From Anthoceros angustus (taxonomy: Eukaryota; Plantae; Anthocerotophyta), in contig VJWM01000204.1 of NCBI GenBank assembly GCA_010909165.1, positions 124,001 through 188,000 on the forward strand: DNA of 64,000 nt, read 5' to 3'. The translations under genes were made by a program, and so were the position numbers. A model generated the notes under the pieces. It was not told where the DNA came from. It saw only the letters and a program-made list of their open reading frames with translations, and did not search any database. Each line of letters begins with the position of its first letter. Within the stretch, counting starts at the first letter, position 1. This document shows, in pieces, positions 40,401-41,659 of the stretch.

Positions 40401-41659
40401 TCTTTCCGATCTCTGTTTTCATGCCTGTTGCTGTCACAATGCACTGACAAGTGCCATTGGTCACTACGGTCCCAGCAAAGGCCATGCAGTCCTTGCCCTG
40501 CAGTTCTATGTCCTCTTCTGTGCCCTCCTCCGTCTGCTTCAAAACTGGCTGGCTCTCTCCTGTTAGAGCAGATTGCTGAATTCTGAGTGTCCCTGACTTG
40601 AGCCGTATTACTCGCATGTCGGCGGGGACTTTGTCCCCAGCTCTCAATTCCACAATATCTCCAGGCACTAACTCTCTTGTTGGCAAATCCAGGATTTGCG
40701 TCCCATCCCGCAACACTCGTGAGGTTTCCGATTGCATGCATTTGAGCGATTCAAGGGTACCCTCCGCCCTAGATTCTTGCCAGACACCAACCACCGCATT
40801 TAAGACGACGATGGACAGAATGATAACGGGCTCTGTGAAAGCTCCAACCCCGATTTCTCCCGTGCCATTCGCATCAGAGATTGCTAGGACGAGCGAGGTC
40901 CCCGCAGCTGCAAGCAGGATCTGCACCAGAGTATCCTCAAACTGCTCAGCCACCAGCTGCCAGAAAGGCCTTTTACTGGGCTTCTCCAGCTCATTCCACC
41001 CGAATTTCGCCCTCCTAACCTCCACAGCTTGAGCAGAAAGGCCAGTTCCAACATCAACCCCAAGGAATTTCGCAACAACATCCACGGCCCTGGCCCAAAA
41101 CGGATAAGGCGTGGGATCACCTCCAGAAGGACTCCCCGTCTGAGAACCAACATTCGGTACCTGAGCCAAGAAAACCAACTACCAGAGCTGAGACACAGAA
41201 CGACAAGCAGATAAGCACAACCCCCTTCCTCCCACTATCCCAAATTCTCGCACCTGCAAAACGGCAGGTGACTTCGCGGAGCCATTTTCAACCCCAACTT
41301 GTGCAGCGCCAGACCGCTCATCCGCCTTCTTCTTCACATTCTGCGCTTGGCAGACGATCAACCCCTGGACAGCACCGACCGCATGCTGGTCAGTCAGGAG
41401 GCAACAGCCACACCAAAACCCGCGACGAAGACATGCAGCAACTTAGACGCGAACTGCGAACTGGTCACAGAATCCGCGAGCTGGACACCTGCAGATGGCG
41501 TTGCCGGGTTTGGCAGAACAGAACTCCTGGACGCATCCTTCCCGACTGCGCACCGGAAGAGGAGGTGATGGCACGCACCCGGCGCCTTGGAAATCGCCCG
41601 CAGCCAACAGTATGGAGCGGGAGGCCGGGCGACGCCATGGCAATTCCTCCAGACGCCAT
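37407..41659 (-). CDS. P2A-type (SERCA/ECA) Ca2+/Mn2+-ATPase with an N-terminal extension of about 100 aa; multi-exon
   Basis: [49 protein letters not shown] and IEMFNALN are all intact. Exons 41659-41489 (57 aa) and 41385-41254 (44 aa) splice in phase 0 into exon 3 at 41160. Confidence 0.9.

Follow-up and report, generated by a model that had tools for sequence, protein, structure and literature searches.

Could a SERCA-type cation pump of a hornwort be destined for the chloroplast? The question is raised by a gene on the minus strand of the 64,000-nucleotide stretch of Anthoceros angustus DNA that we have analysed (hereafter the window), for which the first-pass annotation had proposed two additional 5' exons encoding an N-terminus that resembles a plastid transit peptide. 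Any answer depends upon whether these exons are spliced to the pump and translated with it, and RNA support was therefore drawn from Logan contigs of four public runs, aligned to positions 37200-42400. The contigs of run X1 are identical to the window, while those of X2 and of X6/X7 represent two related organisms, which are 3-13% diverged from it. All eight introns are missing from long X1 and X7 contigs, every boundary being of GT..AG form, and X2 and X6, whose contigs are shorter, also have the introns within their reach spliced out; contigs that skip introns in this manner derive from spliced RNA. The pump gene is real and expressed. Its RNA-supported boundaries (table 1) yield a coding sequence of 3471 nt for a protein of 1156 aa with a single terminal stop, followed by a 3'UTR that extends past 37200 in the transcript contigs. 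One contig of X2 is odd, for it joins 38759 to 39556 via 30 unrelated letters and then continues into unlike sequence; it is probably a chimera or a paralogue rather than an isoform.

Table 1. Pump gene and neighbouring open reading frames in the window, with the evidence for each feature or its content
Feature	Positions	Strand	Evidence or content
5'UTR, at least 255 nt	41660..41914	minus	X1 transcript contig, 5' end at 41914
Exon 1, coding part, 57 codons (aa 1-57)	41489..41659	minus	transcript contigs; no Pfam match
Intron 1, 124 nt, GT..AG	41365..41488	minus	joint 41363->41488 (cut +1) in X1, X2, X7
Exon 2, 111 nt, 37 codons (aa 58-94)	41254..41364	minus	transcript contigs; no Pfam match
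Intron 2, 93 nt, GT..AG	41161..41253	minus	joint 41158->41252 (cut +2) in X1, X2, X7
Exon 3, 321 codons (aa 95-415)	40198..41160	minus	end of linker, YPFWAR (aa 113), Cation_ATPase_N, TM1-2, A domain with TGES
Exon 4, 140 codons	39676..40095	minus	M4 with PEGL (Ca site II), phosphorylation motif DKTGT (D469)
Exon 5, 88 nt, N domain	39500..39587	minus	transcript contigs
Exon 6, 137 nt, N domain	39278..39414	minus	transcript contigs
Exon 7, 93 codons, N domain	38921..39199	minus	transcript contigs
Exon 8, 135 codons, P domain with TGD, GDGVND	38408..38812	minus	transcript contigs
Exon 9, 298 codons + stop, M5-M10 with Ca-site residues	37407..38303	minus	transcript contigs
Germin-like protein gene, beyond the 3' end of the pump gene, opposite strand	34940-35761	plus	intron-less ORF; Cupin_1, E 9e-47
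ORF with weak seed maturation protein (SMP) match	33461-33853	plus	E 6e-4, below the Pfam cut-off

The transcripts sustain the proposed 5' structure in most of its parts and correct it in one. Exon 1 is exactly as had been read, with the same 57 codons (41659-41489) and the same translation, and contigs lacking the second intron confirm the junction 41254/41160. Exon 2, on the other hand, had been credited with 44 codons and has 37, its acceptor lying 21 nt further downstream than thought: a gap of 124 nt common to X1, X2, and X7 places the acceptor of intron 1 at 41366-41365 and replaces the junction 41489/41385 with 41489/41364. An acceptor at 41386/41385 is ruled out by these RNA joints, and the peptide HAVGAVQ that had been assigned to the exon is intronic (21 nt inside intron 1). 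The reading frame is preserved under either acceptor, and the essential claim holds, since both 5' exons are joined in frame to the pump body in transcript contigs of the same organism and of the two related ones.

The start codon at 41659 lies in a strong context, AAAAATGG, with a stop codon in frame upstream. Its 5'UTR contains three short upstream ORFs, at 41878 (MDI*, 3 codons), 41791 (MCSN*, 4 codons), and 41744 (16 codons), which may regulate translation of the pump. They could also be taken to favour the view that the 5' exons are an untranslated leader or an artefact of the gene model, with translation beginning downstream, an objection that the first-pass annotation had itself foreseen. 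We give this view hardly any credence. Contigs of three organisms show the exons joined in frame, and orthologues from other phyla have equivalent coding extensions; moreover, in-frame methionines ahead of the pump body occur only at residues 1, 8, and 42, all in exon 1, and the next is residue 236, inside the pump. Translation must, therefore, begin in exon 1: With no in-frame methionine between 42 and 236 a start codon 3' of the 5' exons is ruled out, and a hypothetical start at 236 would remove Cation_ATPase_N and the first membrane helices. Further upstream, a second X1 transcript contig (2580 nt) ends at 42247, approximately 330 nt from the end of the pump transcript, so that the neighbouring gene and the pump gene share a short intergenic or promoter region.

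Judged from its sequence, the protein encoded behind the leader is an intact cation pump of P2A (SERCA/ECA) type. The SERCA-type model TIGR01116 is the top NCBIfam hit for exons 3, 4, 8, and 9, well above PMR1, PMCA, and others, with 233 + 197 + 133 + 347 bits, or a rough sum of about 910 over these four separately scored exons against a cut-off of 703. The Pfam domains recognised in the protein are Cation_ATPase_N, E1-E2_ATPase, Hydrolase, and Cation_ATPase_C. As had been claimed, the catalytic and Ca-site motifs are all in place: TGES at residue 294 of the spliced protein, PEGL at 426, DKTGT at 469, TGD at 748 and 833, and GDGVND at 834. Exon 9 aligns to residues 725-990 of SERCA2 (E 2e-85), and the Ca ligands of the latter are conserved, namely N and E of M5, N, T, and D of M6, and E of M8. 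The Ca-site glutamate of M4 is present in PEGL, which lies in exon 4.

What precedes this conventional pump is far from conventional. A Pfam search of exons 1 and 2 returned zero matches. Exon 1 encodes that part of the presequence-like leader which is variable, free of acidic residues, basic, and hydroxylated; exon 2 carries GLIVCQA/QNVKKKADE (the slash marking a putative cut) and the beginning of a polar, partly acidic linker, semi-conserved in related proteins, that runs up to YPFWAR at residue 113. The stretch devoid of acidic residues, which had been estimated at about 75 aa, is genuine, even if its length is 71 aa, the first D/E being residue 72; it is the longest such run of the whole protein, and its chance of arising at one given place is about 2e-4 with the D+E frequency of the mature protein (0.114). 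Residues 1-71 contain 12 K/R (9 of them R), for a net charge of +12, but the first charged residue is R22, positions 1-21 being uncharged. A cleavage-like site of the form (I/V)-x-(A/C) is present at residues 60-66, IVCQA/Q. The maximal 19-residue hydropathy ahead of the pump is 0.83, which indicates that the leader contains neither a signal peptide nor a membrane anchor, and both have been ruled out on this ground. Acid-poor, basic, hydroxylated, uncharged at its start, free of an anchor, and provided with a cleavage-like site, the leader would qualify by composition as a transit peptide. In about 110 N-terminal fragments of other plant ECAs the F/YPAW-type motif is found at residues 6-46, and the first 50 residues contain on average 9.3-9.5 D/E in ECA1/4 and ECA2, compared with none here. 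Among related hornworts, the 5' exons differ at 9-13% of letters, roughly twice the value for the pump body (3-5%), and such faster divergence is as expected for a targeting peptide.

To which organelle might a leader of this kind lead? That of the hornwort is rich in arginine and only moderate in Ser/Thr (9 of the 57 residues encoded by exon 1), so that a mitochondrial presequence, or a dual one serving plastid and mitochondrion, also fits, and would place the pump in a mitochondrial membrane. The high net charge over 71 residues agrees with this possibility, as do an 11-residue segment of the leader with the highest helical hydrophobic moment and the leaders of the liverwort Riccia, which are likewise Arg-rich. 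However, the first 21 positions are uncharged and about 65-70 residues separate the start from the putative cleavage site; the leaders of mosses, Marchantia, ferns, and lycophytes are moreover rich in Ser/Thr/Ala (13-17 S/T in the first 60 residues), with a late first charge. An uncharged start, a length of 65-70 residues, and richness in Ser/Thr/Ala are more typical of chloroplast transit peptides. On these features, namely the late first charge, the leader length, and the Ser/Thr/Ala-rich starts of the moss, liverwort, lycophyte, and fern proteins, the plastid is the most likely destination, and we consider the mitochondrial or dual alternative improbable.

The comparison just made presupposes relatives that share the architecture, and these came from a series of searches. 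A word search with exon 3 gave best matches 58-69% identical and reached only proteins of 177-562 aa. An exhaustive search of representatives retrieved a protein of the fern Adiantum nelumboides (P0121) that matches from residue 111, behind a Ser-rich leader, and a cluster look-up retrieved a full-length protein of 1130 aa from a moss metatranscriptome (P0272), with the classic start MAQISAALASV.... Used as a query, region 1-430 of the latter brought up full-length relatives from Physcomitrium, Sphagnum, Marchantia, Riccia, Diphasiastrum, Selaginella, Adiantum, Ceratopteris, Psilotum, and Chara; next came ECA2-type proteins of about 1050 aa, which are rich in seed plants. Neither the exon 3 query, with its reach of 177-562 aa proteins, nor the full-length search with the moss protein produced a hornwort orthologue protein. 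The complete models among these relatives total approximately 1128-1205 aa, with the F/YPAW-type motif at about residue 97-163, as exemplified by Physcomitrium XP_024375732.1, Marchantia polymorpha A0A176VN85, Riccia, Diphasiastrum, Adiantum, and Psilotum. Most of the full-length ones have an uncharged start with 0-2 D/E in their first 50-60 residues; in Physcomitrium (1151 aa) and M. polymorpha (1150 aa) the first 60 comprise 0-2 acidic residues and 13-17 Ser/Thr. Proteins of Chara braunii (P0329) and Selaginella (P0295/P0424) have long N-termini with early acidic residues, hence less presequence-like, possibly reflecting faulty gene models or a different leader in these organisms. Shorter models in the group look truncated at their N-terminus. 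Selaginella SELMODRAFT_112465 appears as SmECA3 in Pedersen et al. (2012), with a listed length of 1045 aa; this model is truncated, and would have hidden the leader in older surveys.

Aligned with one another, these extensions are bipartite: Their first 60-75 residues are unconserved in sequence while constant in composition, and their second part is semi-conserved, with (I/V)RA-x-K ... DV-x-EK ... P-x-N followed by the pump. An unconserved start with a semi-conserved junction is what would be expected of a cleavable targeting peptide continued by a linker of the mature protein.

Does this shared architecture correspond to a lineage? The first-pass annotation had left to a phylogeny of P2A pumps the issue of whether a transit-peptide-bearing clade exists. 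We built one upon 307 columns of the pump body (residues 113-415 of the window protein, with the leader left out) in 57 rows, and a clade of pumps with the transit-peptide-like leader was recovered, at 99* in a quick tree and at 100/100 (UFBoot/SH-aLRT) with IQ-TREE, on a stem of 0.55. Its members come from Chara, liverworts, mosses, lycophytes, and ferns, to which are added the window protein and L001/P0001. These last two pair with each other (99/94), L001/P0001 being the nearest relative of the window protein, and the window protein lies outside the moss, liverwort, lycophyte, and fern groups. L001 is a genomic Logan contig (SRR33208241), 69% identical in exon 3; in its segment 1-956 an in-frame stop is found just upstream of the start 'MPPTFEAGVRAYPAWAR', and the upstream sequence of this contig has no recognisable similarity to the leader exons. 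Seed-plant sequences are placed in the ECA1/4 and ECA2 clades of the tree, and one search produced no seed plant of the leader-bearing clade among its best 120 of 7734 matches. The signature of the clade, QF[ED]D[TP]LVQILL, occurs in 0 of the other 103 proteins among the same best 120 of 7734. The whole clade is nested within plant ECAs, among eukaryote-type pumps, and a cyanobacterial origin is disfavoured by this nesting in a tree built without cyanobacterial sequences. A link with flagellate sperm, which follows the same phyletic pattern, was also considered; the search with the moss protein returned a Ginkgo ECA2 and no Ginkgo member of the clade, which constitutes weak evidence.

The breadth of this clade bears directly upon the notion that the leader is peculiar to hornworts, which is not upheld: It is common to the mosses, liverworts, lycophytes, and ferns of the clade. 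By the same token it is very improbable that the pump represents a hornwort-specific adaptation tied to the carbon-concentrating mechanism of the pyrenoid. This idea comes from the first-pass annotation only, the gene itself being well covered in transcript assemblies, and the literature on the hornwort mechanism that we searched mentions no Ca2+-ATPase. We know of no pyrenoids in mosses, liverworts, lycophytes, or ferns, and a role specific to the hornwort mechanism is unlikely for a clade that includes groups without them.

A separate line of evidence comes from the opposite end of the protein. The window pump terminates in ...DRNQSRNL, as had been noted, without the KKxx or KxKxx retrieval signal of ER residents. 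Of 94 ECA2-type pumps 88 have such a dilysine tail, versus 2 of 13 members of the clade, and the two exceptions form one moss cluster (P0272/P0276). These moss proteins, from a metatranscriptome, end in ...QLAKKSD, formally a KKxx, and Physcomitrium ends in ...NQAEEKL; the KKSD tail could be due either to chance or to a lineage in which ER retrieval was kept or regained.

Loss of the dilysine could, on its own, merely shift the pump out of the ER. Hence the question whether the proteins of this clade are simply endomembrane pumps, residing in ER, Golgi, vacuole, or plasma membrane, with an extension of about 110 residues that stays uncleaved as a disordered cytosolic tail of, for example, regulatory or sorting function. 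Every characterised plant P2A pump is indeed an ER or Golgi protein (PMC8890496; PMC8318260), and reviews list P2A pumps for these two compartments only (PMC8890496). The extension is semi-conserved in its second half, which therefore probably belongs to the mature protein, and one moss cluster has the KKxx-like tail just described. The portions searched of a moss chloroplast proteome and N-terminome contained no match to the pump, another point consistent with an endomembrane location. Yet the first 60-70 residues are unconserved while remaining presequence-like across independent lineages, a behaviour that is typical for targeting peptides but not for regulatory domains, and ECA1/4 and ECA2 have acidic N-termini in which about 9 of the first 50 residues are D/E. 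We therefore regard the endomembrane interpretation as unlikely, albeit as the most serious competitor of a plastid location. Our search of the literature found no GFP, import, or proteomic evidence for the localisation of this pump, no report of a plastid P2A/ECA pump, and no paper describing a clade of this kind.

How does the window protein compare with known pumps and transporters? It has in common with ECA1, ECA2, and ECA4 of Arabidopsis the P2A architecture, the catalytic and Ca-site motifs, and the F/YPAW motif, with about 60% identity to ECA2-type proteins; ECA1/4 and ECA2 are its sister lineages in the tree. It differs from them in about 90-100 additional N-terminal residues of presequence composition, in lacking the two hallmarks of ER-resident ECAs, a C-terminal KKxx/KxKxx and a short acidic N-terminus, and in belonging to a separate clade (100/100) with no seed plant among the best 120 of 7734 matches. 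The same pump mechanism and Ca-ligand residues are found in ECA3 of Arabidopsis and in animal SERCA1-2, but SERCA/ECA3-like representatives are more distant, branching in the tree outside the plant ECA1/2/X group; ECA3, which resides in the Golgi (PMC3355532), has a short N-terminus unlike that of the window protein.

Precedents for P-type ATPases in plastid membranes are HMA1, PAA1/HMA6, and PAA2/HMA8, which reach the plastid via N-terminal transit peptides. These P1B pumps are located in the chloroplast inner envelope or thylakoid (PMC3355532), and HMA1 has been proposed to move Ca2+ (PMC8890496). They are unlike the window pump in that they belong to the heavy-metal P1B subfamily, have other ion sites, and are kept in seed plants. 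A second comparison is with ACA1, a P2-type Ca2+ pump as the window protein is, but an autoinhibited one of P2B type, without a transit-peptide-bearing clade. The original report on ACA1 is said to have assigned it to the plastid envelope. Its chloroplast location has since been discussed (PMC8318260), and the protein is now assigned to the ER (PMC8890496). Finally, the UPF0016 proteins BICAT1/PAM71 and BICAT2/CMT1 are the established routes of Ca2+/Mn2+ across thylakoid and envelope (PMC7076475). They have the same candidate substrates as the window pump, while being secondary transporters that are not driven by ATP and are unrelated to it in sequence.

We thus return to the plastid, and to the explanation that we prefer. 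The leader, the tail, and the tree point, with a probability that we place somewhat above even, to an ancient lineage of plastid-targeted P2A pumps that seed plants have lost. A fuller evolutionary account, for which we see the chances for and against as balanced, would equip the plastids of streptophyte algae, and those of every land plant outside the seed plants, with a host-derived primary Ca2+/Mn2+ pump of SERCA type, which arose before land plants by retargeting of an ECA paralogue and was then lost in the ancestor of seed plants. The clade would have split from the ER-type ECA1/4 and ECA2 lineages, gaining the leader and losing the ER-retrieval dilysine. In the window protein the first 65-70 residues or so would serve as an organellar presequence that is removed by cleavage, most likely one of the chloroplast transit peptide kind, separated from the normal pump N-terminus by a polar linker of about 40 residues. 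Lodged in a plastid membrane, the pump would then spend ATP on driving Ca2+, and possibly Mn2+, to the side opposite its catalytic domains; if these face the stroma, it would either load the thylakoid lumen or export the ions through the inner envelope. Import, cleavage, membrane, orientation, and ion are all elements that we infer.

The possible implications concern the passage of Ca2+ and Mn2+ across envelope and thylakoid, which is only partly resolved, with BICATs, cMCU, GLRs, and the P1B pump HMA1 as candidates. Orthologues of the window pump exist in the transformable models Physcomitrium (XP_024375732.1) and M. polymorpha (A0A176VN85), as well as in Anthoceros itself. If the plastid location is true, the pump would be the first of P2A type in a plastid, and would introduce an ATP-driven step into stromal Ca2+ signalling, or into the supply of lumenal Ca and Mn for PSII, in most lineages of land plants; the transport of Mn2+ and the link with PSII may be part of this picture. 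The handling of Ca2+ and Mn2+ in the chloroplasts of bryophytes and ferns would then differ in kind from the Arabidopsis model, and the pump would be one more plastid trait lost in seed plants.
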